IMG/VR virus record: IMGVR_UViG_3300042502_001233 | Coordinates: 186,001-250,000 of that record | DNA length: 64,000 nt | Reading direction: 5' to 3' (one strand) | Part shown: piece after piece, positions 21,708 through 60,005 of the stretch | Numbering within the stretch: the stretch's first letter is position 1 | Layout of the letters: each line of letters starts with the position of its first letter | Notes under the pieces: generated by a model | Databases searched by the model: none | Seen by the model: the letters and a program-made list of their open reading frames with translations, nothing else | What the model was told of the DNA's origin: nothing | Translations under genes and position numbers: made by a program

Positions 21708-22448
21708 ATGAAAAGTTTTATAAAACAAAGACTCAGAGAACAATTAGTTGAGAGTATGCCAAATGAACTTATTGGTAATATAACAATTAATATTCCGTTT
21801 AACAAATTAGTGTTAGATAAATTAAATTTAGAATGGGCTATTAGAAACATAAAAGAAAAACGACCATCCAGAAGCACCAATAAACCAATGCAAGTAGCGG
21901 TTAGCCATGACAACAAATATTATTTATTAGATGGTTACCATAGACTAATAGAAGCTGTGTTAAACGGTGAAACTAGTACTAAAGGTATTGGGTTAAATAA
22001 ATCTTATGAAGAACTTAAAAAAATGAATAAAATTGGTGTTGGTTGTGCTGGTGGTTCTGGTGATGAATTTTGTAATAACTTTAAAACCGTTGGTTCTATT
22101 GATATGATTAAAAATGAGTTTAAACAAAACAATTTATCTGAGCAAATGATTGATGGACAAAACATGAATGGCACTATGCAAAATAGTTGCAACACAATGA
22201 CTATTAATAGTTACGATGAAGCTTTGAGTAGGGTAGAAGCATCGCTTAAAGGTGTTAGTCCAGAAACAAGACAACAAGTTATGCAAAAAATTCACGTTCC
22301 GTTGGAAAATCTTAAACAAGAAGAACAAAAATTAAACCGTGAAGAAAAATCACAACACATGACTGGTGATTCAATGCCAGACCAAGTAGACACCTATTGG
22401 CACCAGATTCAATCAACTTTGTGTGAATTGGGACCAGATTTTGAATAA
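21708..22448 (+). CDS. ParB/Srx-like nuclease-domain protein with the N-terminal MKxxIKxxLRE tag
   Basis: YYLLDGYHRL motif; N terminus MKSFIKQRLRE. Confidence 0.6.
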   Translation: MKSFIKQRLREQLVESMPNELIGNITINIPFNKLVLDKLNLEWAIRNIKEKRPSRSTNKPMQVAVSHDNKYYLLDGYHRLIEAVLNGETSTKGIGLNKSYEELKKMNKIGVGCAGGSGDEFCNNFKTVGSIDMIKNEFKQNNLSEQMIDGQNMNGTMQNSCNTMTINSYDEALSRVEASLKGVSPETRQQVMQKIHVPLENLKQEEQKLNREEKSQHMTGDSMPDQVDTYWHQIQSTLCELGPDFE

Positions 22449-22450
22449 CT

Positions 22451-22897
22451 ATGAAACGATTAATAAAACATTTATTACGAGAAGCGATGTTGGAGCCTAT
22501 CTTAAATGATAATTTTCACCAATGGTTTGATGGTAGTCAAGTTGTTGATGACAATGGTAACCCACTTGTGTGTTACCATGGTACCAGTAAAAGTTTTTCT
22601 ACTTTTAATCGTAAACATTCAGCACAAGGTGTGTTTTGGTTTACTAGTGATAAAAACAAAATAATCGCTGGAGAAGCTGGTGCCGCATCTAGAGATGCGA
22701 TTATCCCAGTATTTTTATCAGCTAAAAACTTAGCTGGATGGAGCGAATATGGAAAACTAGGATTAGGTCAAATACAAGGTAGAGGTTACGATGGTGTTAA
22801 ATTAGATGATGATTACATTATTTTTGAACCAACTCAAATAAAATCTATTAACAACAAAGGTGAATGGAGCTCAAACAATAAAAATATTTTTAAATAA
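22451..22897 (+). CDS. ADP-ribosyltransferase-like (ART-PolyVal type) protein with the N-terminal tag
   Basis: WFDGSQVVDDNGNPLVCYHGT...FWFTS...GYDGV...YIIFEPTQIKS; N terminus MKRLIKHLLRE. Confidence 0.65.
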   Translation: MKRLIKHLLREAMLEPILNDNFHQWFDGSQVVDDNGNPLVCYHGTSKSFSTFNRKHSAQGVFWFTSDKNKIIAGEAGAASRDAIIPVFLSAKNLAGWSEYGKLGLGQIQGRGYDGVKLDDDYIIFEPTQIKSINNKGEWSSNNKNIFK

Positions 22898-22948
22898 TAT
22901 TTACATTTAAAATAGTTTTTATTATATTTATGATTATACGTTAACTCC

Positions 22949-23007
22949 GTATTGGTTTTGAGTCAGAAATGGCTTCAGAGTTGTCTAGGCAACAAAGAAA
23001 TTAGTAC
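22949..23007 (+). ncRNA. Candidate structured 5' leader (three-way junction)
   Basis: Closing stem GUAUUGGUU/AAUUAGUAC, a GAAA-capped hairpin GAGUCA/UGGCUU and a CUAG-capped hairpin GUUGU/GCAAC. Confidence 0.35.
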
Positions 23008-23039
23008 AATAATAACAATAAATTAAAAGTTAATTAAAC

Positions 23040-24026
23040 ATGAAAAACTTAAATTATGTGGTACCAAAAATGCCAACAGCTAATTTGGCTGTAAACAAAA
23101 GTAGAGTTAAGCTCTACAACAAGCAAGGCGATTTGCCAACTTATTACTTACAAAAAAAGCAAGAGTTCCAGATTGAACTTTTCAATCCAACTACGGACAC
23201 TGTACTTGCTAAAATTACACTTAACGGAAATGTTATCTCACAAGGTGGTCTTGTTTTAAATCCTGGCCAAAGAGTATTCCTTGACAGATACTTAGACGTT
23301 GCCAAAAAATTCTTATTTGATACTTACGAAGTAGCTAACACACAAGAAGTTAAAGAAGCTATTGTAAACAACGGTGACTTCAAAGTAGAATTCTATAGAG
23401 AATCAAAACCAAGACCTAGAAATCCAATAATAACTCTTGGTGGTCTTGGCAAAAGAAGCGTTTTTGGTGGACCAAATTATGACCAAGGGATTATTCGTTA
23501 CGACAGTACAAACACTGGTGGTTACGTTTACAATTCAGGCACTGCACCTAACACACCGTTGTGTAATACATTCACAACGTCTACTAATGCTGTTGGTGGG
23601 TTATATTCAACAACTGGTTTGTTAAGTGGTGATATTTCAAACACCGTTTCAACTAGCGCATTCTATAGTTCAAACGTAAATTATAGCGACACCTTAAACG
23701 GTGAAGTTACAATGGATTGTATGTCGACTGAAAAAAGTGTTGAAACACCTAAAGATTTAACTAGAAGCAAAGGTTTAAAAGCTAAAAAATCTAAATCAAT
23801 TGAAACTGGTAGAGTTGAACAAGGTTCACATTCTGACCAAAAATTCAAAACTGTTGATAAAGATTTTGAATGGTTCGCATTCCATACTGTAGAAGCAAAA
23901 TTACTCCCAATATCTCAAAAAATAAACACAGCTGAAGATATCAACGTAAAAAGATATTGTACAAACTGTGGTGCCAAACTAAGTAAAGGACAAAAGTTCT
24001 GTGCTAACTGCGGCACAAAAGCTTAA
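23040..24026 (+). CDS. Hypothetical protein with a C-terminal double zinc ribbon
   Basis: CTNCG...FCANCG at the C terminus. Confidence 0.75.
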   Translation: MKNLNYVVPKMPTANLAVNKSRVKLYNKQGDLPTYYLQKKQEFQIELFNPTTDTVLAKITLNGNVISQGGLVLNPGQRVFLDRYLDVAKKFLFDTYEVANTQEVKEAIVNNGDFKVEFYRESKPRPRNPIITLGGLGKRSVFGGPNYDQGIIRYDSTNTGGYVYNSGTAPNTPLCNTFTTSTNAVGGLYSTTGLLSGDISNTVSTSAFYSSNVNYSDTLNGEVTMDCMSTEKSVETPKDLTRSKGLKAKKSKSIETGRVEQGSHSDQKFKTVDKDFEWFAFHTVEAKLLPISQKINTAEDINVKRYCTNCGAKLSKGQKFCANCGTKA

Positions 24027-24055
24027 AAAAAAAATAATTAATGTTAACGTATATA

Positions 24056-24086
24056 AAAACCCTAGATTTCTCTAGGGTTTTTTTTT
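24056..24086 (+). terminator. Rho-independent terminator (probably bidirectional)
   Basis: AAAACCCTAGA-TTTC-TCTAGGGTTTT followed by a T run, between convergent genes. Confidence 0.85.
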
Positions 24087-24312
24087 ATTTTATTAATTTA
24101 TTTAATTGGTTTATTATTTCATTTGATTGGGTATCCCATTTTATTATAATATCAACACCATTTGATTTTTTTGGATGGTCAGATATACGTACTGGTATGC
24201 CATTAAATGTAAAATAAATAGAATTTGTTGAAATAGATGCGTTAAAATCATCCATTTTACCTTTATTATTTAACCATTTTGTTGTTTTATTTATTTTATG
24301 ATTAGTTAACAT
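24085..24312 (-). CDS. Hypothetical protein
   Basis: 75-aa ORF containing VRISDH. Confidence 0.55.
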   Translation of the reverse strand: MLTNHKINKTTKWLNNKGKMDDFNASISTNSIYFTFNGIPVRISDHPKKSNGVDIIIKWDTQSNEIINQLNKLIK

Positions 24313-24423
24313 GTTCTTAAAACTATTATAACTATATGAACCTTTATTTTTTTTTTGTAATTTATAAAAAATCTTGGTTTTTCTGTTAAATCATAGTGTG
24401 TAGAAACATTCCTTACAGATAAA

Positions 24424-24525
24424 TTAGGGAAATATTTTTTTACCTTCAATATATAACGGGTCATTTAAAATTTCATTATCGTTTGTTAGATTTTCTCTAA
24501 GTAATTTTTTTATCAATCTTTTCAT
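24424..24525 (-). pseudogene. 33-aa mini-ORF or gene remnant carrying the N-terminal tag (MKRLIKKLLRENL...)
   Basis: Translated by hand; starts 1 nt after the upstream stop and ends early after an A7 run. Confidence 0.5.
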
Positions 24526-24526
24526 A

Positions 24527-25306
24527 TTATCCATATACTACTTCACCCATAACACACAATTGTAAAAATATATCAGCATCGTTAGCATCATATTGCTCGT
24601 CAAGTATATTTTCCCAAACATCTGGGTAATCTTTTTTAACTATTGTTATTGCTTCAAGAATTGAATTCATATCTACAGTACCTAACAATCCTTTATCAGA
24701 ATGTGTTTCAGTGTAATCATCTTCATCATATTCTTCTTCAGCATCATAAAATTGAACATAACCACCTTTAAGGATATATTCACCAATGGCTTCAGATACT
24801 GGCTGACCCATTTCCTTGGCTTTATAACGAACTTCTTTTGGTAAATGCTTTATGTGGTACCAATAATTTGAACCACCCTCTAACGCGTCTACAAATAGGT
24901 TTATAATATCTTCTTTCCCAAAGGTTCTAGATTCTCTAGCTTTAAGTTTTTCTTCTTCGTATTTTTTATTGTTCAAATATTGTGTTGAAACTCTATTAAA
25001 AATATCTTCTCTATTAATATTCTCCCAATTTTTAACATATTTTTCTAATGTATGTATTCTATCTTCTTTTTCTTTCTTTATATTAAGAATATAATCCGTT
25101 GGAACACCTTCAAGTTTACCACTAGCCATTGCAGTCAATATAGAATCCAAAACTTTATGCGTTGTTTCTAACTCATCTTTTAATTTTTCTTGTTGTTCTT
25201 TGGCTTGAATCATTTCTCGATTAACAATTTGGTTTATCTGGTCCAAATCTTCAGGTGTTAACCCTTCTAACCCTTCTCTAAGTAATTTTTTTATATATTC
25301 TTTCAT
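24527..25306 (-). CDS. Hypothetical protein with the N-terminal tag
   Basis: MKEYIKKLLRE start; ATATTTAT 4 nt upstream. Confidence 0.75.
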   Translation of the reverse strand: MKEYIKKLLREGLEGLTPEDLDQINQIVNREMIQAKEQQEKLKDELETTHKVLDSILTAMASGKLEGVPTDYILNIKKEKEDRIHTLEKYVKNWENINREDIFNRVSTQYLNNKKYEEEKLKARESRTFGKEDIINLFVDALEGGSNYWYHIKHLPKEVRYKAKEMGQPVSEAIGEYILKGGYVQFYDAEEEYDEDDYTETHSDKGLLGTVDMNSILEAITIVKKDYPDVWENILDEQYDANDADIFLQLCVMGEVVYG

Positions 25307-25326: not shown

Positions 25327-26010
25327 TTATAAAAGTTTCGTACCTTTACTTAAATTATCTGGACCCCATAACGGTTGAAGATTGCTTAATTTCCAACACT
25401 CTTTAAACCCAATATCATCAGTACTCTCAAATTGAAAACTATTCATCGGTATCTTATGGTCAACATGCCATTCACCATAATTATCCCATGTCATTCCAAT
25501 AGCGAATAATGCTTCTAAATGTATCATTAATTCTTCTATTGAATAACCTAATAAATCAAAAGTTTTATTGGTTTTCTTAACACCACGTTCTTTTAATAAT
25601 TGCCATACAGCGGTTCTAGTTCTAACACCTAATCGGTATTTAGGGTCTTCAGCACGTCTTTTACGTTCATAGTCTCTAGCGTATTTATTTACGTGTTCAC
25701 GATTATTTTCTCGCCAATTAGTGTGATATTCACGTAAACCATCTCTATTACTTTTAGACCATTTTTTATTATATTCACTTATTTTTTCTTTATTTTTTTT
25801 AATGTATTTTTTGTTAGCCACGGATTTACCACCTATATTTCTCCTACCAGATGGACCGATGTTCACTCCATTTTCTTTAAGTGTTCTTAATATTATTGTT
25901 TTATGAAAACCCATACGTTCACTAATAGTTGTAGAACCTAATAATTCATCATTATACATTTTTAAACATTCTAAAATTTGTTCTTGTGTTAATTCTATTT
26001 TTTTGCTCAT
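25327..26010 (-). CDS. HNH endonuclease (probable homing endonuclease)
   Basis: MTWDNYGEWHVDHKIP...CWKLSNLQPLW...NLSK; ATG at 26010 follows a TTG-N20-TATATTTG promoter. Confidence 0.85.
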   Translation of the reverse strand: MSKKIELTQEQILECLKMYNDELLGSTTISERMGFHKTIILRTLKENGVNIGPSGRRNIGGKSVANKKYIKKNKEKISEYNKKWSKSNRDGLREYHTNWRENNREHVNKYARDYERKRRAEDPKYRLGVRTRTAVWQLLKERGVKKTNKTFDLLGYSIEELMIHLEALFAIGMTWDNYGEWHVDHKIPMNSFQFESTDDIGFKECWKLSNLQPLWGPDNLSKGTKLL

Positions 26011-26070
26011 TTTCTTATAATTTATACAAATATATAAATAATAGATTATAAAGTCAAGGATATAACGCAA

Positions 26071-26096
26071 AAAAGGTGGAAATAAATCCACCTTTT
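26071..26096 (-). terminator. Terminator after the major capsid gene
   Basis: AAAAGGTGGA-AATAAA-TCCACCTTTT. Confidence 0.8.
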
Positions 26097-26118: not shown

Positions 26119-28008
26119 TTATCTCAACTCATTAATATTGAATGTTTGTACACCATCCACTCTTAAATGTCCGTAGAAACGGTTGTTAACAGTTTTTTTC
26201 GCGTAACGAGTCATGATACCTTTCACTGGAGCAAAGTTGAATGGGTTATACATTGTAGGTGTCAATTGTAATGGCACGTATGGAGCATAGATGTATCCAG
26301 TGTCTAACAATGATTTACCTTTGTGACCAATGATGATAGAGTAAGATGGTGCATAAGGGTCACGGTACACTTGGTAACGTCCACTTAAAGAACCGATTCT
26401 TTCAATACCCATGTTGTATTGGTCTTGCTCTGGGTTAGCGTCACTTACGTGGAAGTATTCTAAGTCATCAAAGATAGCTGAGATTTCTGAAGATACTACG
26501 ATAAAGTTAGCACCACCTCTAAGAGTTGATTTATGGATTTGAGCAGAGATTTGGTTTAATTTAGTAATTAAAGTTTGGTTCCACTCTTTTTGTGTGTATG
26601 GTGCAGCAGCATTACCTGTAGCTTTTCTCCATCCGTTGTAGTCCCAACGCAATTGCCATGCAGCAGCTTTACGTAAGTCTCTAAGGATTTCACGGTCGAT
26701 TTCAGCAGCAACTTGCTCAGAAAGCATTGCAGTTAATTCAGCTTCAGCGTCGATGTTGTGGAATGCACTAACGTCTTGCGCTAACTCTGGAGACCATGTA
26801 GCTCTTAATTTTCTTTCTTCAACTGATACTACAACTTCATCTAATCTGAAAGATACTTCTCCCATTTCAGTTTCAAGTTCTAATGTAGCGTATTCAGCCC
26901 AAGTTACAACTAAACCAGCACCACCTAAAGCACTTGTACTAGTGATAGCAGATACAGTAGTAGCGGAAGCACCTACATAACCATCGTATGTTGCAGTACC
27001 TACAGCAGCAGCACCTGTACCAGCAGTTGAACCAGCTGGGTGAGTCAAGTCTAACTCAATGTACATAACACCGTTTGGTGTAGTTAATATTGGGTAACCA
27101 CTAGCGTTAGTGTTTTTAGTTTGAACAATACCACTACCGTATTTTTGAGTTACAAGACGGAATGGAACTTCACCACCAGCAGCGATAATTTGGTTACCAT
27201 CACGGTCTAAAATAGCGTTAGTAGAAACAACTTTCAACGAAGCCAAGAATGACTCAGTATCCATATTGTTACCATCAGGACCAGTTAATACTTCTCTACC
27301 AGCAGCAGAACCAGCACCACCTGTGAAACCTGAAATAGACAATAAAGCATTTCTTACAGAACCATCAGCAGCTGTTGGGTAACTATTTGATGGAGTTGCA
27401 GTAGTAAATTCACCATTAGTTCCTAAAGTTTGACCGTTAGCGTTAGTAATACTATAAGATACAATTGTAAGAGTACCTTTTGAGTTATCGAATAAACCAT
27501 CATTGTAGAAAATATCATACAAGTTTTTAGCCATCCAAGGAGTCATTGTACAAGTACTAGTAGCAGTTTTAACACATGAAGGAATACCATCATACCCCAT
27601 TGAAGTGTGAGCAGAGAAAGTAGGTCCATCACCGTTGTAGTAATCACCACCTTGACCAGCAGCGTTTACACGCTCTGAAGTTAAAGGTACGAAGAAGAAC
27701 AATTTACCGATTGGCATGTTCATAGCTTGTACTGATACAACGTCATTAGCTAATAATTTTGAGAAAACTCTACGTACAATTGGGAATACTACAGTTTCAA
27801 AAGAACCTGAGCTACCAGCAGTAGTTGATTCAGTCAATAATGAAGACGCTTGGTTTTCATATAATTGAGCGATGTTTTCTTTAACGTGGCCTCTAAGACC
27901 ATCTAGGAATCCTAATGAATCCCATTTTTGTTGAGTCTCTAAACGGATAGCCTTCATGTGGTTTAATCCGATGTTACCAACTTGTCCAGATGTTAATAAA
28001 TGTGACAT
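26119..28008 (-). CDS. gp23: Major capsid protein, T4 gp23-like
   Basis: PIVRRVF...VQAMNMPIGKLF, RKLRATWSPELAQD...IDAEAEL, EIDREI, YAPYVPL and GIMTRYA; LLTE|S maturation-site-like motif. Confidence 0.97.
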   Translation of the reverse strand: MSHLLTSGQVGNIGLNHMKAIRLETQQKWDSLGFLDGLRGHVKENIAQLYENQASSLLTESTTAGSSGSFETVVFPIVRRVFSKLLANDVVSVQAMNMPIGKLFFFVPLTSERVNAAGQGGDYYNGDGPTFSAHTSMGYDGIPSCVKTATSTCTMTPWMAKNLYDIFYNDGLFDNSKGTLTIVSYSITNANGQTLGTNGEFTTATPSNSYPTAADGSVRNALLSISGFTGGAGSAAGREVLTGPDGNNMDTESFLASLKVVSTNAILDRDGNQIIAAGGEVPFRLVTQKYGSGIVQTKNTNASGYPILTTPNGVMYIELDLTHPAGSTAGTGAAAVGTATYDGYVGASATTVSAITSTSALGGAGLVVTWAEYATLELETEMGEVSFRLDEVVVSVEERKLRATWSPELAQDVSAFHNIDAEAELTAMLSEQVAAEIDREILRDLRKAAAWQLRWDYNGWRKATGNAAAPYTQKEWNQTLITKLNQISAQIHKSTLRGGANFIVVSSEISAIFDDLEYFHVSDANPEQDQYNMGIERIGSLSGRYQVYRDPYAPSYSIIIGHKGKSLLDTGYIYAPYVPLQLTPTMYNPFNFAPVKGIMTRYAKKTVNNRFYGHLRVDGVQTFNINELR

Positions 28009-28041: not shown

Positions 28042-29391
28042 TTATCTTTTTTCAACTCTGTGAATTAAATCCATAATTCTTTTAGTTGAAGGGTCAACAT
28101 ACGCAGTGCTTTCGTTCAATTGTTTTGAAGTACTTGTAGTTGCCTCTTTTATAATTTTGTTTTCTACTGATTCTGAAATTGGTTTTCTTGATTCCAATTC
28201 GTTAGCAATAGTTTTGTAAAGTCTTTTTGACTCTTTAAGGTTTGTTACTTCTTCATCAAATCTTTTGATGATAGTTTGTTTCTCACCTTTTGTTGTAGAG
28301 TGTTCCATAAACAATCTAGTTACATATGTTAAATTGCTGTTGAATACTACAGTTTCTACTAATTTTGTTCTAAATTCTTTAAGAGCTACTCTGAATTCTT
28401 GATTCTCAGCTTTAAGTTTAGTTGCTTCAGTTAATAAACTGTTATATTTTTTAGCTGTTTCAGAAACTATCTGTTTTGCTTTGTTTACTGTTTCATCGAT
28501 TTTTTTACCGTCTACAGATTTTTTACCGTATCCTAAGTGAGAAGAACCGTGTCTTCTTTGACCTTGATGACCAGCATAACCATTAACGTTACCGATGTTT
28601 TCTTCCAATTCTTCCTCTTCTTCGTCCAATTCTTCCTCTTCGTTCAAATTTTCTTCTTCATCAGATTCCTCTTCAGTTTCTTCACCTTCTTCGTCTTCGT
28701 CATCACCTTCTACATCATCACCTTCTTCGTCATCTAATTCGATTTCGTAGTCCATGTCTTCACCTTCTTCGTCTTCTTCTTCACCACCCATTTCAGCTGG
28801 TTCTAAATCTAACTCTTCTTCACCACCCATTTCAGCTGGTTCTAAATCTAACTCTTCATCATCACCCATTTCTGGTTCTGAAGATGGAGCTTGACCGTCA
28901 AGTTTAACAACATATTCTCCTGGTTCTGTAATGTTTAAGTGAAGTTCATCACCTACAATTTCAATTTCGTCTTCGCCACTTAATTTTTTGTAAATTGCGA
29001 TTACTTCATCGTCTGGTGCTCCAACCATATCGATTTCATCTGATGCGTCTATATCATCCATTCCTATACCACCCATGTCGTCACCCATGTCGTCACCCAT
29101 GTCAGTATCAGGTTCTAAACCACCTTCTACATCACCCATGTCGTCGCCCATTTCGCCACCAAGGTCTTGGTTATCGATATCATCTCCACCTAATGTTTCA
29201 ACGTCGTCACCCATTTCGGTGTCAACATCTTCTTCGTCGTAAATCTCTTCTTTTAGAGATTCTTTCACAACACCATTAATTTCTTCTTTCGCAACCGAAC
29301 GAAGTATTTCTTTGGTATTGGCATTAAGAGCATTCTGAATATTGTTAATATCCAAAAGTGCTTCTTCAAGTATAGATTTTTTATCTGCCAT
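28042..29391 (-). CDS. Prohead core/scaffold protein (gp22-like position), highly acidic
   Basis: Lies between the protease and MCP genes; D/E-rich middle, coiled-coil C terminus and many L/I-x-E sites. Confidence 0.75.
   Translation of the reverse strand: MADKKSILEEALLDINNIQNALNANTKEILRSVAKEEINGVVKESLKEEIYDEEDVDTEMGDDVETLGGDDIDNQDLGGEMGDDMGDVEGGLEPDTDMGDDMGDDMGGIGMDDIDASDEIDMVGAPDDEVIAIYKKLSGEDEIEIVGDELHLNITEPGEYVVKLDGQAPSSEPEMGDDEELDLEPAEMGGEEELDLEPAEMGGEEEDEEGEDMDYEIELDDEEGDDVEGDDEDEEGEETEEESDEEENLNEEEELDEEEEELEENIGNVNGYAGHQGQRRHGSSHLGYGKKSVDGKKIDETVNKAKQIVSETAKKYNSLLTEATKLKAENQEFRVALKEFRTKLVETVVFNSNLTYVTRLFMEHSTTKGEKQTIIKRFDEEVTNLKESKRLYKTIANELESRKPISESVENKIIKEATTSTSKQLNESTAYVDPSTKRIMDLIHRVEKR
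28781..28858. repeat. Near-perfect 39-bp tandem duplication within the scaffold gene
   Basis: Encodes EELDLEPAEMGG(E) twice. Confidence 0.85.
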
Positions 29392-29511: not shown

Positions 29512-30237
29512 TTAGCCATTTAAAAAATTATCCAATTTATCATTCAGTGATTCAGTCATAAGTGGCTTCTTAATCTCGGTATTTTCCACATATGGTCGCG
29601 CTTCTTCATGATTTTTAAAAATCCAAGCGTCTGGTGTTGAAGGTGCTGTAACAACATCCCAACAAATAATTTCGAAGTCATCTTGTACAATTTGTTCTCC
29701 ATTTTTACCTTCTTTTAACGAACCAACTCCTCTGGAAGACACACCAATTTTTATTCTGTTTCTTAATAGATTAGCTACTTCATCACCTTTGGTAGATACA
29801 ATTCCCAAATTAATAAACCCAGGTGTCATTAGAATCTCCATCTTACCCATAAGTGTTTTACCTTCCCACCATGTTTCTACAATGTTGTGGGAAATTCTAT
29901 CACCAGCAATAATAGAAGACTCAGGGTGGTCTAATTCACCCACAGCTCTACGCTCACGTATGGCTTCTTGATATATTTGATTTTGTTTTTTTAAAATTGA
30001 TTCTGGGTAAATTCTACCGTTACGATTAAGTACATCGTATTTTTGTAGTACCACATAGACAATTAACGGTTCAACTATTGCTAGTTTGCTGCCTGTGTCT
30101 AATTTCTTTATTTCGTTTATGAATGCTTGGTTTCTTGGTTCATCAGGGTTGATGTACCCAGCGTCTTGTTCAATTAGACCACCCCAACCAGTTTCTCCAC
30201 GTTTTAATACTTTGAAGTCTTTATAATTTATATCCAT
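29512..30237 (-). CDS. gp21: Prohead maturation protease, T4 gp21-like
   Basis: NRNGRIYP, AVGELDHP, IGVSSRGVGS and WDVVTAPS. Confidence 0.95.
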   Translation of the reverse strand: MDINYKDFKVLKRGETGWGGLIEQDAGYINPDEPRNQAFINEIKKLDTGSKLAIVEPLIVYVVLQKYDVLNRNGRIYPESILKKQNQIYQEAIRERRAVGELDHPESSIIAGDRISHNIVETWWEGKTLMGKMEILMTPGFINLGIVSTKGDEVANLLRNRIKIGVSSRGVGSLKEGKNGEQIVQDDFEIICWDVVTAPSTPDAWIFKNHEEARPYVENTEIKKPLMTESLNDKLDNFLNG

Positions 30238-31155: not shown

Positions 31156-31389
31156 TTATAAAATTTTAATATTATTTAATATTGTCTTTATTGTTGCACA
31201 CATATTTTCGTAACATTTCATTTTTGATTTAGGGGTTTTAGAACCTTCAATCTCAACAACACCTTTTTCTACAACATTTTTTAAATGTTTAATTATTTTT
31301 TTATATTCTACTTCTGATTCTTCACGACCACATATTTGGTCCGTTAATTCTCTTAATTTTAAAATATTTTCACTTGGAACACTTTTCAT
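31156..31389 (-). CDS. Hypothetical protein
   Basis: 77-aa ORF. Confidence 0.55.
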   Translation of the reverse strand: MKSVPSENILKLRELTDQICGREESEVEYKKIIKHLKNVVEKGVVEIEGSKTPKSKMKCYENMCATIKTILNNIKIL

Positions 31390-32221: not shown

Positions 32222-34303
32222 TTATTCATCTAACATTTTATTTATGTCTTTTATCATAGAATCGATATCGTTATTTATTTTAATTGTTTTGTCGTAAATT
32301 TTAACGTTTTCATCTACAACGTTTGCATCACTATTAACTGACTCAATTAATTTATTGACAAATCTACCTTGATATTTGGTACTTCTATCTTCTAATTTTT
32401 TAGCAAGTTGTGTTTTACGTTCTGTCAATAAGTTATCAGCTTTCTTTAGCATCTCTGTTAACTCAGCTTCAGCTTCAGTTCCAGCTTCAGCACCAGCTTC
32501 AGCACCAGCTTCAGTTCCAGTTTCACCACCAGCTTCAGTTCCAGCTTCAGCACCAGCTTCAGCTCCAGCTTCAGCGCCAGCTTCAGCACCACCAGCTTCT
32601 CCAGAGAAATCTAAGTCTTCACCGCCTAGACCACCGCCACCGAATGAACCACCTAGGCCGCCTCCACCGCCACCGCCACCAGCGGCACCACCTTCACCTT
32701 CAGCTCCACCACCGCTACCACCAGCTAGCGCTGCTTGATAATCACCATAGATTCTATCAACTGTGTCAAACATACCAGTATGTTTAATAATACTAGCAGT
32801 ATTAGCTAATTCAGCCGCAGCGGCTTTCTCCATACGTTGTTCAAGTAAATCTTGTTTGATTTCATCATCAGCCCAACCCATGATTTCTCTATGAGCTCTA
32901 GTCCATGACATAGCAGCCAATCCATTTCCAATGTCTGAGGTAGCATCTTTAAGTAAAGCAACTTTAGCAGCCAAATGTTCAACTTTAAGCATTTCAGCTT
33001 GTGTTGATGGGTTGTTAAGTGTAAGTGTAAAGTTATCCAAATCTTCTTCAAAACCTAAGATATACAAGTGTATGATAGCAATCTTGTTAAGTTCTTGAAG
33101 CATTGATTGTTGAATACGGTTAATCGTTCTAGAAAAACGAATATCTTGTAGTGCTAGGTTTTTACCATCACCAGCAGTTTCTTCAAAACCTAAGAATGGT
33201 TTTGGAACACGTAACGCAGTAAATAAGTTTCTTTGCAAATATTCAATATCAGCAATTTGGTCCAAATTAGATGCACCAGGTAAAGTCTCAATCGGATTAG
33301 GTGCGTCTTCACTTCTAACAGGGATAAAGAAATCTTGGTCGTTAGATAATTGATTGTATCTTAAATCTATTTGACCAGTTTGTGGGTCAACAATTGGCAT
33401 ACGTTTAAACCTGTCAGCGATTTCATTTACGTATTGTGCAACGTCAGCGTCGTCAATGTTACCTACATATATTTTATAAACACGTCTTTCTGGCGCCCTT
33501 GTAACACGATATACAAGCATTGAATCTTCAGATAAGATAAGTTGTTTCCAAATACGTCTAGCTTTTTCTAGTACAGATGTACCGTAAGGTAAACGTCTAT
33601 CATCACCCAACAAACGGAAGTGAGCAATTTGCCATGAGTTGAATTCGATATCACGACCTCTCCAATAAAACTTTACTCTGTCTTTATCGTTTTCATCGCT
33701 AGATGCTTGCTCTCTACCACTAACCAAATCATACAATCCAGCTTCCCTACGTTCCATTTCGTAGTTAGGCATTTGTTTGGCACCAAGAACACCTTGTTTA
33801 TCGCTGATATTTAAGTATATGAAATTATCTCCATATTTACAAGTGTTTCTAGTCCACATTGGTAAAGTTGTGTGTAAATCCAAACGGTTGAAGAATAAAT
33901 CTTCTATAATACCTTTAACACGTTTACTATCAGAATAAATGTTAAGCACTCTACCGTTGTTATTTACAGTTGTAGATTCTTCCATCATAACATCCAAAGC
34001 GGCTGCGATAGTTGGGTAAAACTCCATAGCTTCAAAATCTGAATATGAACCAACACGCGTTGTTTCATAATTGATAGATTGTTGAAACATACCATTTTCT
34101 ACTTTTTTCCAAACTTGACCTAAGTATTTGTTTTGTTGAGCTTGAAGTTTTGCTGTTTCGTATTCTTCTTTACTTGTTGTTTTTAATAACTCACCATTGC
34201 CAACATTATAACGTTGTGTTGGTTGTTTTTGAGTTGGTTGTGTGTAATTAGGGTCAAGTACTCTACCTAACCTTTGAAATATTGTTAAATTTTCTTTTGC
34301 CAT
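32222..34303 (-). CDS. gp20: Portal protein, T4 gp20-like, with a low-complexity C-terminal extension
   Basis: VYRVTRAPERRVYKIYVG, DFFIPVRS, IETLPGASNL, ALRVPK and DIRFSRTINRIQ. Confidence 0.95.
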   Translation of the reverse strand: MAKENLTIFQRLGRVLDPNYTQPTQKQPTQRYNVGNGELLKTTSKEEYETAKLQAQQNKYLGQVWKKVENGMFQQSINYETTRVGSYSDFEAMEFYPTIAAALDVMMEESTTVNNNGRVLNIYSDSKRVKGIIEDLFFNRLDLHTTLPMWTRNTCKYGDNFIYLNISDKQGVLGAKQMPNYEMERREAGLYDLVSGREQASSDENDKDRVKFYWRGRDIEFNSWQIAHFRLLGDDRRLPYGTSVLEKARRIWKQLILSEDSMLVYRVTRAPERRVYKIYVGNIDDADVAQYVNEIADRFKRMPIVDPQTGQIDLRYNQLSNDQDFFIPVRSEDAPNPIETLPGASNLDQIADIEYLQRNLFTALRVPKPFLGFEETAGDGKNLALQDIRFSRTINRIQQSMLQELNKIAIIHLYILGFEEDLDNFTLTLNNPSTQAEMLKVEHLAAKVALLKDATSDIGNGLAAMSWTRAHREIMGWADDEIKQDLLEQRMEKAAAAELANTASIIKHTGMFDTVDRIYGDYQAALAGGSGGGAEGEGGAAGGGGGGGGLGGSFGGGGLGGEDLDFSGEAGGAEAGAEAGAEAGAEAGTEAGGETGTEAGAEAGAEAGTEAEAELTEMLKKADNLLTERKTQLAKKLEDRSTKYQGRFVNKLIESVNSDANVVDENVKIYDKTIKINNDIDSMIKDINKMLDE
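32465..32730 (-). repeat. Gly-rich tract and (GAEA/GTEA)n coding repeat in the portal tail
   Basis: Repeated CCAGCTTCAGCA-type 12-mers on the + strand. Confidence 0.85.
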
Positions 34304-51931: not shown

Positions 51932-53593
51932 ATGGAAGATTTAAAAAAATTCATGGATGACACTGTTAAATGTGAAATTCTAAAATACGCTAGTTATGAC
52001 GATAAAAATGGTGGTATTGCTAAACCAGAATATAAATTTACTGTTCTAATCAGAACGCTAAATTTTGAAAATAAAACTAATAATGATATAAAATTAATTA
52101 TTGATGAGGCTGGTTTGTTATTAAATTACGATAATTGTCATGTTTCAATGTTTTCTATCGGTAAACTAAACGGAGAAGTTTTTTCAGTTAATGAAACTGA
52201 TGATGACTTTGCTGTCTTAGATAAACATTTAAGTGATGGTAAAACAATTGTTTTATATTCTGCTAAAATTGATACTGGAAAAGTGTATTACAGATATTCT
52301 TTGGTTAAAGATAAACCATTAAATAGAATGGAAGAAATTAAAAAAAGAGTTGATAAATCAGATAATGTTTTATTATTTGATAAACACGAATTAGAGTCTT
52401 TAAAAAAGATTACTAAAACAACCAAAATATCTGATTATGAAGTTTTAACTGATGATGGTTTTGTTGACATAGAGGCATTACACGAAACAATACCGTATGA
52501 AGTATATCATCTAAAATTAAAAGACGGTAAAGAACTTAAATGTGCTGATAATCATATTGTATTCGTTAGTGAATACCATGAAACTACTTTTGAACCAATT
52601 GGTTTAACCGAAATATTTGTTAAAAATTTAGAAATAGGTTCGTTTGTTATGGTGTCTGATGATAACGGTAATCTAACAGAATCTGAAGTTGTTGAACTTA
52701 CGAATTTAGGTTATGAAGAAGTAATGTATGACCTTGAACTAAAAGAAGGTTCCAATAGACGATATTATACCAATGGTATTTTATCACATAATACGATGTT
52801 GGCTAAATTGTTAGCAGAAGAAGTATTTGGTGATGCTGATTCATTGTTTAGAATCGATATGTCTGAGTATATGGAGAAATTCTCTGTGTCGAGATTGGTT
52901 GGTCCACCTCCTGGATATGTTGGGTATGAACAAGGTGGTCAATTGACTGAGAAAGTTCGTAGAAAACCACACTGTGTTGTTTTGTTTGATGAGATTGAAA
53001 AAGCTCATGAAGATGTATTCAACTTGTTATTACAAATGCTAGATGAAGGTCATTTGACTGACGGATTAGGTCGTAAAGTTAATTTCAAAAATGCTCTTAT
53101 TATCATGACATCTAACATTGGTGTTAAAGAAGCAAACTCATTTGGTAAGACAATGGGTCTTGAGACACCAAACGGAATGTTAAATGAAGAAAACAAAGCG
53201 CGCGCTATTATCGAAAAAGCTCTTAAAAAGAAATTCAAACCAGAGTTCTTAAACCGTATCGATGAAGCAATTATCTTCAACAGCCTTAAACGCGAAGACA
53301 TCCACGAAATCATCAACGTTGAGTTTGAAAAACTTAGAAAAAGAGTTGTTGAAATGGGTTACGATTTAACCATTGAACAAGCAGCGTTAGATTTCTTGGC
53401 AGAACATGGATACGATGAAGAATACGGAGCTAGACCTCTTACCAGAACACTTCAACATTATGTAGAAGATACGGTGGCTGATGAAATTTTGGCTGACCAT
53501 ATTGTCGAAGGACAAACCATCAATATCGTTTATGATAAAGATAACGATACATTGATTGTAAAACAACCAAAAACACCCAAACCAAAAAAATAA
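51932..53593 (+). CDS. clpC: Split-intein C fragment fused to the C-terminal half of ClpC
   Basis: ...YYTNGILSHN|TMLAKLL..., RIDMSEYMEK, GPPPGYVGYEQGGQLTE, LFDEIEKAH, TSNIG, PEFLNRID and YGARPL. Confidence 0.93.
   Translation: MEDLKKFMDDTVKCEILKYASYDDKNGGIAKPEYKFTVLIRTLNFENKTNNDIKLIIDEAGLLLNYDNCHVSMFSIGKLNGEVFSVNETDDDFAVLDKHLSDGKTIVLYSAKIDTGKVYYRYSLVKDKPLNRMEEIKKRVDKSDNVLLFDKHELESLKKITKTTKISDYEVLTDDGFVDIEALHETIPYEVYHLKLKDGKELKCADNHIVFVSEYHETTFEPIGLTEIFVKNLEIGSFVMVSDDNGNLTESEVVELTNLGYEEVMYDLELKEGSNRRYYTNGILSHNTMLAKLLAEEVFGDADSLFRIDMSEYMEKFSVSRLVGPPPGYVGYEQGGQLTEKVRRKPHCVVLFDEIEKAHEDVFNLLLQMLDEGHLTDGLGRKVNFKNALIIMTSNIGVKEANSFGKTMGLETPNGMLNEENKARAIIEKALKKKFKPEFLNRIDEAIIFNSLKREDIHEIINVEFEKLRKRVVEMGYDLTIEQAALDFLAEHGYDEEYGARPLTRTLQHYVEDTVADEILADHIVEGQTINIVYDKDNDTLIVKQPKTPKPKK
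52328..52792 (+). mobile_element. Split intein C fragment (about 155 aa from the internal Met133)
   Basis: VLTDDGF, ELKCADNHIVF (block B, with a CxxH variant of TxxH), MYDLEL (block F) and SHN|T (block G). Confidence 0.85.
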
Positions 53594-53643: not shown

Positions 53644-54180
53644 ATGAAACAAATGATAAAACAATTATTGCGAGAAGCCATTGATAAAACAATCACATGT
53701 AAAAAATGTGATTGGCATTGGAAAGAGTCTGAATCAGACAAAAAAGATTTGTACGTTTGTCATAAATGTGGTCATGATAACACACCAAAAAAAGAAAATA
53801 TTAACGAACGTTTGCTAACCAAACATAAAGAAGATATTTTGGATGTTGCTGATTTTGTTAATTTTGCTAAAAAATATTTAGATATTGATGATGATATTAA
53901 AGTTGAATTGGCTTTTGAAAGAACACCAGACCTTAGAACAACCGCATATTACAACAACGGTGAAAAACGTATGAAGATATATGTTAAAAATAGAGCTATT
54001 ATAGACGTATGTCGTTCAATTGCTCATGAATTAACACACCACAAACAAAATCTAGAAGGAAGAATAACAGATGCCAGTAAAGATGGTCAAGACGGTAGTG
54101 ACATAGAAAATGAAGCTAACTCAGTTGCTGGAGTTATAATAAGAAAATGGGGTCGTATACATCCTGAAATTTATGAATAA
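53644..54180 (+). CDS. Tagged protein with a zinc ribbon and an HExxH metallopeptidase-like domain
   Basis: MKQMIKQLLRE; CKKC...CHKC; SIAHELTHHKQ...ENEAN. Confidence 0.7.
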   Translation: MKQMIKQLLREAIDKTITCKKCDWHWKESESDKKDLYVCHKCGHDNTPKKENINERLLTKHKEDILDVADFVNFAKKYLDIDDDIKVELAFERTPDLRTTAYYNNGEKRMKIYVKNRAIIDVCRSIAHELTHHKQNLEGRITDASKDGQDGSDIENEANSVAGVIIRKWGRIHPEIYE

Positions 54181-55024
54181 TACAAGAACACTACTAAGAG
54201 AAGAAATTGCCTTAAACGATAGAAAATTGCTATTGAATGAGCACTCTATGTCATTGATACAAAATAGCGAGTATATAAAACATGTTTTGGGTATTCAGAC
54301 ACCATTGTTTGAGTATTATTCTTTTGAACTTAGAAAACAAATAATTGACGAAGCTTTATCAATACAAGGTGTTTTACAATCAGCTAACAGCTATTTAGTT
54401 GGTCAGATTGAAAAAGGTAAAGAATATGTTGTAAAAGCTATTGATACCGTTAAATCAACTAAAGATATTGTAATATTATTTAAAAATTTAATTTTATCAC
54501 CAGAAAATATGGTTAAAGCCAATAGAGGGTTAAATAAAATATGTACAGATTTAACAAATGATGCTCAATCTGTAATTACCTATATAACTGAAAAATTACC
54601 TAATATAGTTAACTTTACCGAAGGAATGGTAAATATGTTAAACAAATTAAAAAGAATTGTAACTGACGAAATAAACGGTAACGGTTGGACAGGTTTTCTA
54701 GCTAAATTTGGTCTTGCATGTTTAATGACTTACATTAAAATAAATGTATTTGATAAAATACTTAAATTAGGTATTCAGTTTATTAAAGATGGTGCAGTAC
54801 TTTTCACAGGGGTTCAAGGGTTGCTTCAATTGTTTAAAAATTTTAAAGAAACAATAATTCAAAATGGTGATATAAAACAAATAATAAATTGGATAACCAA
54901 CATAGGTAAAGAAGCCGCATCATTAAATTTAAGTTTAGCGTTTGATATAATGGTAGCAGTAACAACCGTTTGCACAGCTTTGTTAGCCGTTATTAATTTC
55001 AAATTTGATTTGAGAAAACAATAA
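54173..55024 (+). CDS. Hypothetical protein with a tag-like N terminus
   Basis: MNNTRTLLREEI...LLLNE. Confidence 0.65.
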   Translation: MNNTRTLLREEIALNDRKLLLNEHSMSLIQNSEYIKHVLGIQTPLFEYYSFELRKQIIDEALSIQGVLQSANSYLVGQIEKGKEYVVKAIDTVKSTKDIVILFKNLILSPENMVKANRGLNKICTDLTNDAQSVITYITEKLPNIVNFTEGMVNMLNKLKRIVTDEINGNGWTGFLAKFGLACLMTYIKINVFDKILKLGIQFIKDGAVLFTGVQGLLQLFKNFKETIIQNGDIKQIINWITNIGKEAASLNLSLAFDIMVAVTTVCTALLAVINFKFDLRKQ

Positions 55025-55036
55025 AATAAATATATT

Positions 55037-55345
55037 ATGAAAAATACAATCAAAGGTGGTAAAGCAGATAAAATGACACCACAAGACATCGCAAATAAAT
55101 TCAAAGTATCAGTTTCTGATATTGAAGCTCAATTAAAAAAAGGTATTGAGGTTGAGTTAGAACATACTGATAATAAAGAAAAAGCTAGAGAAATAGCTAT
55201 GGACCATTTGTCAGAATTTCCAGATTACTACGATAGACTTGAAAAAATGGAAAATAACCCTTCTAAAGAATTTAAAACAACTGAAATAAACGAGAACAAC
55301 AAAATATTAATTAAACGTCTCATAAAAGAGAATTTAAACAAATAA
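55037..55345 (+). CDS. DUF5661-like small phage protein
   Basis: LKKGIEVELEHT...AREIAMDHL.E.PDYY..L..ME; C-terminal KILIKRLIKE. Confidence 0.7.
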   Translation: MKNTIKGGKADKMTPQDIANKFKVSVSDIEAQLKKGIEVELEHTDNKEKAREIAMDHLSEFPDYYDRLEKMENNPSKEFKTTEINENNKILIKRLIKENLNK

Positions 55346-56822: not shown

Positions 56823-56978
56823 TTATCTAATAAAAATATCTACATCGTAAATTTCTAATAACGCTTCAGTTTTTAAATTTTTAATTTTAGCAAATAATTC
56901 AGCGGCCTCAATCAAAGTTTTGGCTGAAACCGTATTAATTGTCTCACCATCTTTTGTTTTTAATGCAAATTTTTTCAT
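56823..56978 (-). CDS. 51-aa hypothetical protein
   Basis: Translated by hand as MKKFALKTKDGETINTV...; host-type promoter at 56993-57023. Confidence 0.55.
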   Translation of the reverse strand: MKKFALKTKDGETINTVSAKTLIEAAELFAKIKNLKTEALLEIYDVDIFIR

Positions 56979-57164
56979 AGGTTAATTTTTTACAAATATA
57001 CTTATAAATATTTAAAAAAGCAATAAAAATTTTAATTTATCAAACCTTTTATTTTATTTAACACTTATAGGTTTTTATATCATTCCCTTGGATTATGACC
57101 CTAGAGCGTTTACAACTTTTGGTAGGGTGGTTAAATAACTTACTTTAAAATTATTACTCATATG

Positions 57165-57695: not shown

Positions 57696-57724
57696 AACAT
57701 TTGTTTTTTTGTGTTATATGTAAT

Positions 57725-57751
57725 AAAAAAGGCTCCCACAACAGGAGCCTT
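57725..57751 (-). terminator. Terminator-like hairpin
   Basis: AAGGCTCC-CACAACA-GGAGCCTT with an adjacent A run. Confidence 0.75.
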
Positions 57752-57757
57752 ATATTT

Positions 57758-59167
57758 TTAATTAAAATTGGTTGTTGGTAACAACTCCTTTAATTTGTTA
57801 TACTTTGTTTCTCCTATATCTTCTACATTAACGACAATTCTAAATAACGACCCACCATTACTTTTATCAAGCATGGTTATTTCTTCTGGAATCTCAATAT
57901 CTTTGTTGCCTTTGATGTTTAAAAACTCTAAATTTTTTAAATAACCTATTTCTTTAGGTAACACTTTAAGTTGGTTGTTGGTCAATGCCAACATATTCAA
58001 CGTAGCTAAATTACCTATAGACGGATGTATTTCACCCAATTTTGCGTTGGTGATTATAAGTTGGTCTAGTTTTTTAAACTTAGAAATATTAGGTAACTTT
58101 CTAATCTCTTTGTTCATAAACCTAATCGTAGGCAACTTATCATCCAACAACTCAAATAAACTCTCTGCAAAACCAAATTGCATCAAGTAATCTAAGTATT
58201 TGTTCGAATCAATACCACCTTTATATCCCTTGGCCATTTCCAACAACTCGTCATGGAAATAGTTAGTGATACCTTCACTCTCACTAATCACATTTTCAAA
58301 AATGCTAACGTTCTGTCCATTTTGTCTGTCTTTTAACTGATTGGTTTCAAAATGAATCTGAAATAACTCCTTGGTTTTACCCTCAAAAAACTGATTAGGA
58401 ATTATGATATAAATATCTGATTTCTTCCCGTTAGGTTTTCTATGTCCGTTAGTATATGATTTAAACATACCATTTCCTTCTCTGGCGGTACACCAGTTTG
58501 CGAAATTCGCAAACACTACACTAGCTTCAGTTGTTTTAGGGATATACAGCGTAAACTTTCTATCTCTAACTGGAATAACAGCTTGACCAGCGTCAACAAA
58601 TTTTTGTAACGTTCGCTCAATCGCTGAACTATCTTTTTCAATAAACGGGTCAACAGCGTCAAACAACTGAGACAAAGATTTATATTGATTAATATTTGTT
58701 GGGTCTGTTATTCCTTTAAGGCTATAACTGGCCAAACATAAATCTTTGAATTTTCGTTTTCTTTTGTTATCCTCAAACAAAGTCAAATATTTGTTGGCTT
58801 GTGGTAAATCTTCACTTACAAAACGAACCGCCATATCTCTTGAATTAGGTTTATCGCTCTTTAACAAACGAGAAAATAAATTCAACATCCATTGCAAATA
58901 GATTTTATTTTCAGTTGGGTCAGCAGCTATCATTTCACTAAATACTTTAGAACAAACACTAATTTTTTTAAGAGTTCTTTCTTTTTCGTTACCTTTGCTA
59001 GAAACAATTGCTAATAATCCATAACCGTTTGATACAATGTCAGCATCATAACCTTCAGAGTTAATCGCTGCAAGTTTTGCATCTACTAATACTTCTTCAG
59101 TAGATTCGAACACATCGAATAGTTCCGCTAAAAATACAATTCTATCTGTAATACTGTTTTTTTTCAT
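57758..59167 (-). CDS. Leucine-rich-repeat protein with an N-terminal DPT...YLQW / NWCT domain
   Basis: LxxLxLxxNxLxxLPxxIxxLxxL repeats at the C terminus; host-type promoter at 59184-59214. Confidence 0.8.
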   Translation of the reverse strand: MKKNSITDRIVFLAELFDVFESTEEVLVDAKLAAINSEGYDADIVSNGYGLLAIVSSKGNEKERTLKKISVCSKVFSEMIAADPTENKIYLQWMLNLFSRLLKSDKPNSRDMAVRFVSEDLPQANKYLTLFEDNKRKRKFKDLCLASYSLKGITDPTNINQYKSLSQLFDAVDPFIEKDSSAIERTLQKFVDAGQAVIPVRDRKFTLYIPKTTEASVVFANFANWCTAREGNGMFKSYTNGHRKPNGKKSDIYIIIPNQFFEGKTKELFQIHFETNQLKDRQNGQNVSIFENVISESEGITNYFHDELLEMAKGYKGGIDSNKYLDYLMQFGFAESLFELLDDKLPTIRFMNKEIRKLPNISKFKKLDQLIITNAKLGEIHPSIGNLATLNMLALTNNQLKVLPKEIGYLKNLEFLNIKGNKDIEIPEEITMLDKSNGGSLFRIVVNVEDIGETKYNKLKELLPTTNFN

Positions 59168-59220
59168 AAACTTGTTTTATGGACAAAGATACAAAAATAA
59201 AATGAATAAGGCAATAGGTT

Positions 59221-59559
59221 TTATAAGAATCTTTTAAAAAAATCTTCTTCTAAGTACTCTTCAAGTCTTTTTTTTAAAAACCAAACAACCCCATCTAAAT
59301 TGTCTGACTCTCTGTTAGCTATATCTAAAATCACTTCATTTGGATTCTCACCATCTGTAATCCTATATTTAATTTCTTGTAAAACGTTTTTCCCACCTTG
59401 CTTGACTAAATTTTCTACTATTAAATTATATGTATCCCATCTCATTTCTTCATCCTCATTTAACGTATCTAACATGCAATTTATGTGTTTGTAATACGCT
59501 TTATCTAAGGTTGTTTTTCTTGTTTTATTATCTTTTAAAAGAAATTTTTTAACATCCAT
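59221..59559 (-). CDS. Hypothetical protein (paralog-like to 59685..60005)
   Basis: EIKYRITDGENPNEVILDI. Confidence 0.65.
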   Translation of the reverse strand: MDVKKFLLKDNKTRKTTLDKAYYKHINCMLDTLNEDEEMRWDTYNLIVENLVKQGGKNVLQEIKYRITDGENPNEVILDIANRESDNLDGVVWFLKKRLEEYLEEDFFKRFL

Positions 59560-59684
59560 AATCAGTAAATTTTAATCAATCGTTATTTAATGATAAATAT
59601 CGCGAATCGTCAGATTGGACATTAAATTTTAACTAACAAGTGTTTGATTTACTGGTAATCAGATATATAACGATAAAAAAATAT

Positions 59685-60005
59685 TTACAAATTTTTTATC
59701 TTTTCATAAAGTCTTTGAAGCTCAGGTGATTTATCTTTGATGTCAGATATGACTTCAATACAGACATCGTTAGGGTTAGAATTATCGGTTAGTTTATATT
59801 GTAATTCTTTAACCTTAAGCATGTTTTTTAAGCTGTTTTTAAGTTCTAAAATGACTTGGTTATAAGTTACCCAAGCTTGTCTTATTTTAGTCGTTCCTGA
59901 AACCAAATTTTCAATCAATACGTCTTCATACTTATGTTCTAAGTACGAATCAAAGTTCCCATAGTTTTCTCTTAGAACTTTACGTATTTTTTTCTTCAGG
60001 TCCAT
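59685..60005 (-). CDS. Hypothetical protein with the N-terminal tag
   Basis: MDLKKKIRKVLRE; ELQYKLTDNSNPNDVCIEV. Confidence 0.65.
   Translation of the reverse strand: MDLKKKIRKVLRENYGNFDSYLEHKYEDVLIENLVSGTTKIRQAWVTYNQVILELKNSLKNMLKVKELQYKLTDNSNPNDVCIEVISDIKDKSPELQRLYEKIKNL

Follow-up and report, generated by a model that had tools for sequence, protein, structure and literature searches.

A short peptide leader that recurs at the N-termini of otherwise unrelated proteins in an uncultivated, T4-like jumbo phage with a 362-kb genome probably serves, as we propose here, as a capsid-targeting and processing leader in the style of phage T4. The stretch of DNA under analysis (the window) comprises 64,000 nucleotides, bases 186001-250000 of the 362,018-bp viral record IMGVR_UViG_3300042502_001233, with a G+C content of 30%; about 11 genes of the whole genome bear the leader. 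An earlier note on this DNA had taken such near-identical N-termini for an address that loads a set of enzymes into the phage head, and our analysis supports this reading, since all of its predictions that can be tested computationally came out as expected. The leader resembles the capsid-loading signal of T4 and may therefore mark the proteins that phages of this group inject along with their DNA. For comparison we refer repeatedly to two complete relatives, G016 (368 kb) and G001, which has a 73% identical capsid protein and the same protease.

The leader copies listed in the earlier note are all found in the window (Table 1), where the back-translated pattern MKxxIKxxLRE gives five matches, where 100 dinucleotide-preserving shuffles have 0.00 on average, and both of the variants it named, the N-terminal MNNTRTLLRE and the C-terminal ILIKRLIKE, were confirmed. 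The scan of the whole genome which it recommended was carried out here as a pattern scan: in the called genes, about 110,000 residues, I[KR]xx[LV]RE occurs 11 times, and 10 of the 11 copies lie inside the first 9 residues. Five further tagged genes are situated outside the window, at genome positions 11313, 11935, 32252, 42974 and 353762, and one internal copy belongs to the genome gene 33067-33999 (-). Two of the listed copies qualify as tagged proteins only in part. The one at 24525 does carry the leader, but on a stub of 33 amino acids (aa), and it is probably what is left of a decayed tagged gene, because the frame of the stub passes two stop codons into a 75-aa open reading frame (ORF) at 24085-24312. 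The one at 60005 shows a looser form of the leader, but it belongs to a conserved core gene with orthologues in G016, G001, G006, G007 and G008, of which that in G001 reads LRD instead of LRE, and its status as tagged cargo is for these reasons uncertain.

The consensus of 87 distinct leaders reads M-K-x-[LFI]-I-K-[KQ]-L-L-R-E-[NGSA]-[LIF]-[LIV]-x-E, with a length of 11-16 residues, and positions 4, 7, 12, 13, 14 and 16 are conserved though the search pattern had left them free. The residue that follows LRE (P1') is N, G, S or A, and a second Φ-x-E (Φ being a hydrophobic residue) is found within 8 residues in 46% of leaders compared with 14% of background windows, a 3.3-fold difference. Two tagged proteins were modelled with AlphaFold, and in both models the stretch from residue 2 to residue 13 or 14 is helical and poorly packed, ahead of the folded cargo. 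In the model of the protein at 53644 residues 1-15 have a predicted local confidence (pLDDT) below 50 and residues 60-178 are confident; in that of the protein at 21708 residues 2-13 form the helix and residues 8-15 have pLDDT < 50. The models suggest that the leader is a free N-terminal basic amphipathic helix, lying outside the cargo fold and before a low-confidence linker.

A minus-strand head module of the T4 type is present in the window and comprises terminase, portal, three small genes, protease, a scaffold-like protein and the capsid gene. The gp21-like protease, which the earlier note had expected, reaches 91.7 bits with a family cut-off of 27, and it also matches phrog_207, 'head maturation protease' (E = 5e-40). 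In an alignment with its closest relatives candidate sites near the protease C-terminus read PLMTE↓S, as they do here, or PIIKE↓N (the arrow stands for the candidate cut). The capsid protein has a candidate maturation site of the form [LI][LI]xE↓[SA]T, with an invariant Glu and a free P2 across 17 clade members; this would be as expected of a gp21-type cleavage site. The leader ends in a motif of the same form, a likeness to the capsid protein that had been pointed out before. The scaffolds begin clade-wide with MA-x-KKS-[IL]-x-EE↓A, that is, with 10 residues and then Ala, and keep [VLM][VI]KE↓S near residue 45; both motifs are likely to be protease sites. The possibility that in a more distant clade the N-terminus of the scaffold itself carries the leader was rejected, since the matches began at an internal Met. 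The small genes between portal and protease, as well as the scaffold, gave zero Pfam or PHROGs matches, and by position the 77-aa protein among them is a candidate prohead-core protein.

The strongest single result linking the leader to the protease comes, in our opinion, from the alignment of the ParB-fold family, to which the tagged protein at 21708 belongs. Glu-11, the last residue of the leader, is kept in just 4 of its 28 leader-bearing members, and yet a Φ-x-E↓S at residues 11-15 is found in 28/28; the sole member without the second Φ-x-E site retains the first. The leader may also vary together with the capsid site: its P3 is Leu in 17/18 leaders where the capsid P3 is Leu, compared with 7/13 where it is Ile (p = 0.012), which is suggestive only, because the value is uncorrected for phylogeny. 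Modest support, and only that, comes from the count of LLTE in the proteome, 9 where 3.3 are expected. A predicted complex of the S77 protease with the tagged ADP-ribosyltransferase, made without controls, had a score of 0.00 and counts neither for nor against.

The leader is found widely in relatives of this phage. A related capsid protein is encoded on at least 598 IMG/VR stretches, and the leader pattern scan of IMG/VR, covering at least 118 DNA stretches, gave 89 matches for evaluation, of which 78 open ORFs of at least 60 aa, mostly with an in-frame stop about 20 codons or less upstream. Among the 75 distinct tagged proteins of the IMG/VR matches listed there are at least 36 mutually unrelated cargo families, and a second protein set has 32 cargo families among 50 tagged proteins. 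Four near relatives have 2-9 tagged genes per 65-100 kb, with 26 matches to the leader pattern compared with 0 to the reversed pattern. Tagged ORFs adjoin the capsid gene in many related loci, often as the immediate next gene, and an S77-family match is present in all tag-bearing IMG/VR records of 79% completeness or more, in one case with a score under the family cut-off. The expectation that every relative would be richly tagged was rejected, the number of tagged genes being about six in G016 and a single one in G001. When the region was compared by Megablast with the phages in GenBank there were zero matches, and the closest cultured capsid proteins, those of Flavobacterium phage immuto and of a Microcystis phage, are 38-42% identical.

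The earlier note had called the leader modular, and the comparison of orthologues bears this out. The polynucleotide kinase/phosphodiesterase (PNK/CPD) gene starts here with MKKEIRTILRE↓DMKK, and its G016 orthologue, 64% identical, begins exactly past the leader. The domain of the small zincin at 53644 is without leader in a cyanophage homologue and in immuto sits inside a large NadR-annotated protein; a domain with the signature CxxL...EVINYV...LLRSGG is found both with and without the leader, and a Zn-ribbon module is optionally placed between the leader and a zincin or NUDIX cargo. The leader is thus a detachable add-on, gained or lost exactly at orthologue N-termini. Only 3 of 13 tagged genes have any match in G016, compared with 259 of 516 for all genes, and most tagged genes are accessory ones of fast turnover.

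As to the cargo, the assignment of an ADP-ribosyltransferase (ART) domain to the protein at 22451 was correct: it is of the ART-PolyVal type (PF18760, E = 7e-17, 62.9 bits, gathering cut-off 31.2), and the protein has further matches among PHROG families with profile lengths of 1664-2900 positions. A second ART-PolyVal domain (44.3 bits) stands in the genome gene 33067-33999 (L002:3067-3999) right behind the internal leader FLIKTLLRE-NLLPE-S, which is preceded by a 120-residue domain. The same fusion layout, with a zincin behind the internal leader, is seen in G016 at 71811-72539 (-), and these two fusions, in which the leader region reads NENK-F/P-L/M-IK-T/S-LLRE, look like two-part polyproteins; apart from them, most tagged proteins have a single cargo domain. 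The description of the protein at 21708 as ParB-like stands at the level of the fold and not at that of the sequence family. It has zero Pfam ParB matches at E <= 0.05, and its model retrieves Noc, ParB and sulfiredoxin as top Foldseek matches (E about 2e-3, probability up to 1.00); the LLDGYHR motif is invariant in the family alignment, and a ParB/sulfiredoxin fold is therewith supported at fold level. Its gene and the ART gene directly follow baseplate-like genes.

The protein at 53644, noted previously for its HExxH motif, does retrieve zincin folds, namely those of minigluzincins, IrrE/PprI and SprT-like proteases, with both HExxH and ENEAN invariant, and it belongs to the largest tagged-protein cluster of the clade. 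At residues ~50-60 its ENINERLLTK aligns with the leader KQLLRERLLTK of short family members and seems to be what remains of a second leader after a tagged Zn-ribbon module had fused to a tagged zincin gene. Upstream of it, at 51932-53593 (+), lies a ClpB-D2-like AAA+ ATPase gene (AAA_2, 193 bits; ClpB_D2-small) with a Hint/intein-like insertion, the ATPase part of which is conserved in G016 and G001. The 283-aa protein with the variant leader (54173) has zero family matches in Pfam and PHROGs.

Endonuclease genes apart, the 259-aa tagged gene comes first downstream of the capsid gene; its orthologues directly follow the capsid gene in two related loci, L008 and L020, and its C-terminal half matches phrog_2355. 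An HNH-like ORF with a promoter-like motif of host type, TATATTTG, of its own (25327-26091, -) is wedged here between the two genes, and in relatives the capsid gene is directly followed by a tagged gene, without the HNH-like ORF between them. Elsewhere in the clade the leader precedes GNAT, NUDIX and GP88 domains and possibly a kinase, and most of the cargo is without a known family. The set of enzymes behind the leader would accordingly include ADP-ribosyltransferases, the ParB/sulfiredoxin-fold protein, the small zincin, the polynucleotide kinase/phosphodiesterase, NUDIX and GNAT proteins. Some of these domain types are known from phage proteins that are packaged or injected; by analogy with these, judged by domain types alone, the cargo may have a role in anti-defence or host takeover.

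The upstream regions bear on the expression context. A motif (G)ATATTTATAA with T-rich flanks stands 10-27 nucleotides (nt) before 88 genes, and it precedes the protease-scaffold-capsid operon, the terminase and the baseplate genes; as the ATATTTAT(A) class it was counted before 82-88 genes, those of the head and tail operons included. ATATTTAT is found just upstream of 16/37 tagged genes compared with 219/1561 others (odds ratio 4.7, p = 2e-5), and other tagged genes follow, on their own strand, a gene that has the motif. The mRNA leaders would be very short, because the motif is only 12 nt before the ATG in several tagged genes, including the 259-aa gene. A second motif class, TATATTTG, precedes 45 genes; it resembles the -7 promoter element of Bacteroidota. 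This -7-like motif, together with many lipoprotein-like signal peptides, points to a Bacteroidota host, and the clade of uncultivated jumbo phages probably infects Bacteroidota.

From these data it would be logical to suggest the following order of events. The basic amphipathic helix M-K-x-Φ-I-K-x-L-L-R would attach the tagged protein to the prohead core during assembly; the gp21-family protease would then cut at one or two Φ-x-E sites that precede a small residue; the cargo, thereby released within the head, would leave with the DNA at infection. A portable leader would let genes turn over fast behind a constant address and give each lineage its own enzyme set.

Several observations weigh against this proposal. 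In the alignment with T4 gp23 the candidate capsid site falls some 16 residues past the cleavage point of the latter, with other Φ-x-E candidates nearby, and L-x-E is a short motif, LL.E being found 77 times in the proteome. Two or three leader copies are internal or C-terminal, which is compatible with cleavage but not with a strict rule of N-terminal docking. Furthermore, G001, with its similar capsid protein and the same protease, has just one tagged gene, directly after the capsid gene, so the leader system is not universal in the clade. Finally, we infer docking, cleavage, packaging and injection of the tagged proteins from their sequences, and the ATATTTAT motif is likewise a presumed late promoter.

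Other explanations each cover a part of the data, but the invariant Glu, the second site kept in compensation and the agreement with the capsid site are not accounted for together by any of them. The leader, being a basic amphipathic helix, might dock elsewhere, on the inner membrane, a chaperone or a Clp-like unfoldase, the likeness to a protease site being incidental; the ClpB-D2-like gene just upstream of the tagged gene at 53644 could be taken in its favour. We find this improbable: it leaves the near-invariant Glu with its small neighbour unexplained, as well as the compensatory second Φ-x-E and the match and partial co-variation with the capsid site, and a link of the leader to the Clp-like ATPase proved unsupported, the ATPase being equally present in G001 with its one tagged gene, and the gene is split from that at 53644 by a terminator-like hairpin and a promoter-like motif. 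An unlikely reading, in our judgement, is that the prohead protease cuts the tagged proteins without their delivery, either as a late activation of zymogen type or because they are transient helpers of the prohead core. All the evidence on cleavage sites fits it equally, and some tagged or tag-like genes encode conserved small proteins near head genes, like the degraded T4 core proteins gp67 and gp68; the fast turnover of most tagged genes, accessory as they are, and the host-directed types of enzyme among the cargo (ART, NUDIX, GNAT, PNK) speak in favour of delivery, a pattern typically seen in effectors that are injected, Alt and the internal proteins of T4 among them.

It is also conceivable, though very improbable, that the conserved element acts as nucleic acid, either in the initiation of translation or as the joint of a recombination cassette (promoter and first 33 nt), with no role for the peptide. 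Codon identity among the leaders inside this genome is indeed raised, 0.70 compared with 0.57 expected, isoleucine 5 being ATA in 9/10 copies and leucine 9 CTT in 5/10, and two tagged genes share about 20 nt upstream, including a promoter-like motif, which suggests that leaders spread by recombination. Across 70 distinct leaders from many genomes, however, codons at the fixed residues follow background usage, the sole excess being CTT at leucine 9; the upstream regions are otherwise unrelated, highly expressed structural genes are without the element, and internal copies keep the peptide without ATG. The constraint thus appears to act on the peptide, and spread by recombination, with which the raised within-genome identity fits, is compatible with a function at the protein level.

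The capsid-targeting sequences (CTS) of T4 offer the closest model for the reading we prefer. The T4 protease gp21 cleaves its substrates behind L/I-x-E, and 10 N-terminal residues are enough to bring IPIII into the head, the N-terminal part of the leader directing targeting and residues 8 and 10 processing; the CTS was suggested as a general route of protein loading for T4-like phages (PMC9026906). T4 internal proteins are diverse and share only a conserved targeting sequence (PMC3012670). T4 ipII and ipIII start with MKTYQEFIAE↓A, and the ipI leader has 19 residues ending in ITE↓A. As on IPI, IPII, IPIII and Alt, the leader here is short, N-terminal, carried by unrelated, fast-evolving proteins, and has an MK and hydrophobic start and an L/I-x-E end followed by a small residue; a gp21-family protease, a gp23-type capsid protein and one ADP-ribosyltransferase cargo are likewise common to both. 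There is zero detectable sequence homology between the leaders, and since they agree in no more than the initial MK, their length and the final L/I-x-E, analogy is supported and homology is not. The leader is basic here and acidic in T4, and often has two Φ-x-E sites; its cargo families are many more and, where identified, in good part enzymes, in contrast to the small basic proteins of T4. Internal or C-terminal copies are met here now and then, the genome also has a second, longer family of leaders, and the function of the leader, unlike that of the T4 CTS, is deduced from sequence.

In phiKZ, 201phi2-1 and SPN3US a diverged homologue of gp21 cleaves head proteins behind a Glu, with redundant sites in the propeptides, and the SPN3US paralogues gp53 and gp54 agree completely in their N-terminal 15 residues, MANFVKSKLARESVE, which include two candidate sites (PMC5694885). 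This N-terminus is strikingly similar to MKSFIKQRLREQLVE here. The proteases of those phages, unlike ours, prefer S/A-x-E, most of the propeptides exceed 100 residues, and the capsid and core gene sets of that giant-phage group are not T4-like; in SPN3US the N-terminus is on two paralogues, here the leader is on dozens of unrelated families. Packaging and injection were predicted for polyvalent proteins, which have 2-15 domains per polypeptide, often with a MuF or portal packaging handle (Iyer et al. 2017, PMC5512222), and T4 Alt is the prototype of a packaged ART, with relatives adjoining baseplate genes (PMC5512222). The repertoire of ART-PolyVal, ParB-like, zincin peptidase, NUDIX and GNAT domains is the same here, but mostly with one domain per small gene, each with its own leader, and with few fusions that have an internal one. 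Cargo-loading peptides of encapsulins are also short and portable and address diverse enzymes inside an HK97-fold shell; they are usually C-terminal and uncleaved, and work without protease, scaffold or DNA.

In the literature we did not find this leader or a survey of capsid-targeting sequences beyond the T4 and phiKZ/SPN3US work. The loading principle is known from T4; new are the leader sequence, the scale, the single-gene cargo of polyvalent type, in good part enzymatic where identified, the internal copies at domain junctions and the second, longer leader family. Should the leader act as that of T4 does, it would be a second one, of distinct sequence, with which to study protein loading into large capsids. 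The proteins delivered with the DNA could then be recognized by a simple rule on their sequence, which would give a catalogue of candidate host-takeover and counter-defence enzymes, most of them without a known family, and the T4 loading principle would reach far beyond T-even phages and be widened to dozens of cargo families. We put forward, tentatively and as a proposal for which the balance falls a little short of even, that the leader is an address label listing the whole injected set of the clade, the internal copies being protease-cut linkers that make small polyproteins of the fusions, and the second, longer leader loading a separate set. If so, it would mark dozens of effector families, most with an unknown fold, as the single-gene counterpart of polyvalent proteins.

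The second, longer leader family was exposed by de novo clustering of N-termini. It reads M-x-K-L-I-I-T-E-x-Q-Y-x-R-L...[LI]-x-E↓[TSG] or, in a fuller form, M-x-K-K-L-[IK]-I-T-E-x-Q-Y-x-R-L...[LI]-x-E↓[TSG], over about 21 residues, and is carried by five proteins of 112-833 aa (Table 1), with three copies in G016 and one in G001; it is never internal and, by analogy with the long ipI leader of T4, may be another targeting class. Clustering at 6/11 identities chained unrelated AT-rich N-termini in big genomes and was useful only for the 160-kb genome of immuto (MW353176, W01). There an N-terminus MKKSQLRQIIKE recurs on 4-5 genes (102250, 102836, 113144, 123311) and another, MENFDLKKFLVEN, on 5 genes (1803, 103762, 117587, 118588, 125197); both contain Φ-x-E, and each has members beside the prohead protease. 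With recurring leaders of its own, immuto makes the idea testable at the bench and is a possible laboratory model.

Table 1. Leader-bearing genes, head genes and candidate cleavage sites in the window (positions of the window unless stated; arrow, candidate cut)
Feature	Position	Strand	Remarks
Tagged gene, 246 aa	21708..22448	+	ATG start; leader MKSFIKQRLRE-QLVE↓S; probable ParB/sulfiredoxin-fold domain, then C-terminal helical domain
Tagged gene, 148 aa	22451..22897	+	ATG start; leader MKRLIKHLLRE-AMLE↓P, then ART-PolyVal ADP-ribosyltransferase domain
Leader on 33-aa stub	24493..24525	-	ATG start; MKRLIKKLLRE
Tagged gene, 259 aa, unknown function	24527..25306	-	ATG start; leader MKEYIKKLLRE-GLEGL
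gp23-like major capsid protein	26119..28008	-	T4 gp23 structure matches, E = 1e-28
Candidate capsid maturation site LLTE↓S, residues 57-60	27829-27840	-	from sequence
Acidic scaffold-like protein	28042..29391	-	start MADKKSILEE↓A; conserved VVKE↓S at about residue 45; LLTE↓A at residue 322
gp21-family prohead protease (Peptidase_S77)	29512..30237	-	PF03420, E = 5e-26
77-aa protein between portal and protease	31156..31389	-	starts MKSVPSENILKLRE↓L; orthologue in G016
Portal protein	32222..34303	-	LLTE↓R near C-terminus, residue 628
Large terminase, 999 aa	34596-37595	-	best relative matches span ~350-360 residues
Tagged gene, 178 aa	53644..54180	+	ATG start; leader MKQMIKQLLRE-A; Zn ribbon, then small HExxH zincin
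Variant leader, 283-aa protein	54173..55024	+	MNNTRTLLRE-E; hydrophobic C-terminal half
DUF5661 protein	55037..55345	+	C-terminal leader-like ILIKRLIKE-NLNK (ILIKRLIKENLNK); PF18905, E = 2e-17
Leader-like, looser form, 106-aa core protein	59685..60005	-	ATG start; MDLKKKIRKVLRE-N
Second-leader protein	60013-60351	-	in the genome also 72141-74606, 140375-141349, 145125-147626 and 147946-148356, all -

Two minor observations concern genes away from the leader. The large terminase appears to hold an intein with a homing-endonuclease-like insert. In G016, at ~15.5-34 kb, there is a very long tandem run of tiny ORFs of about 50-80 aa each, nearly all of which start with M[KNDI]LG[KNE].

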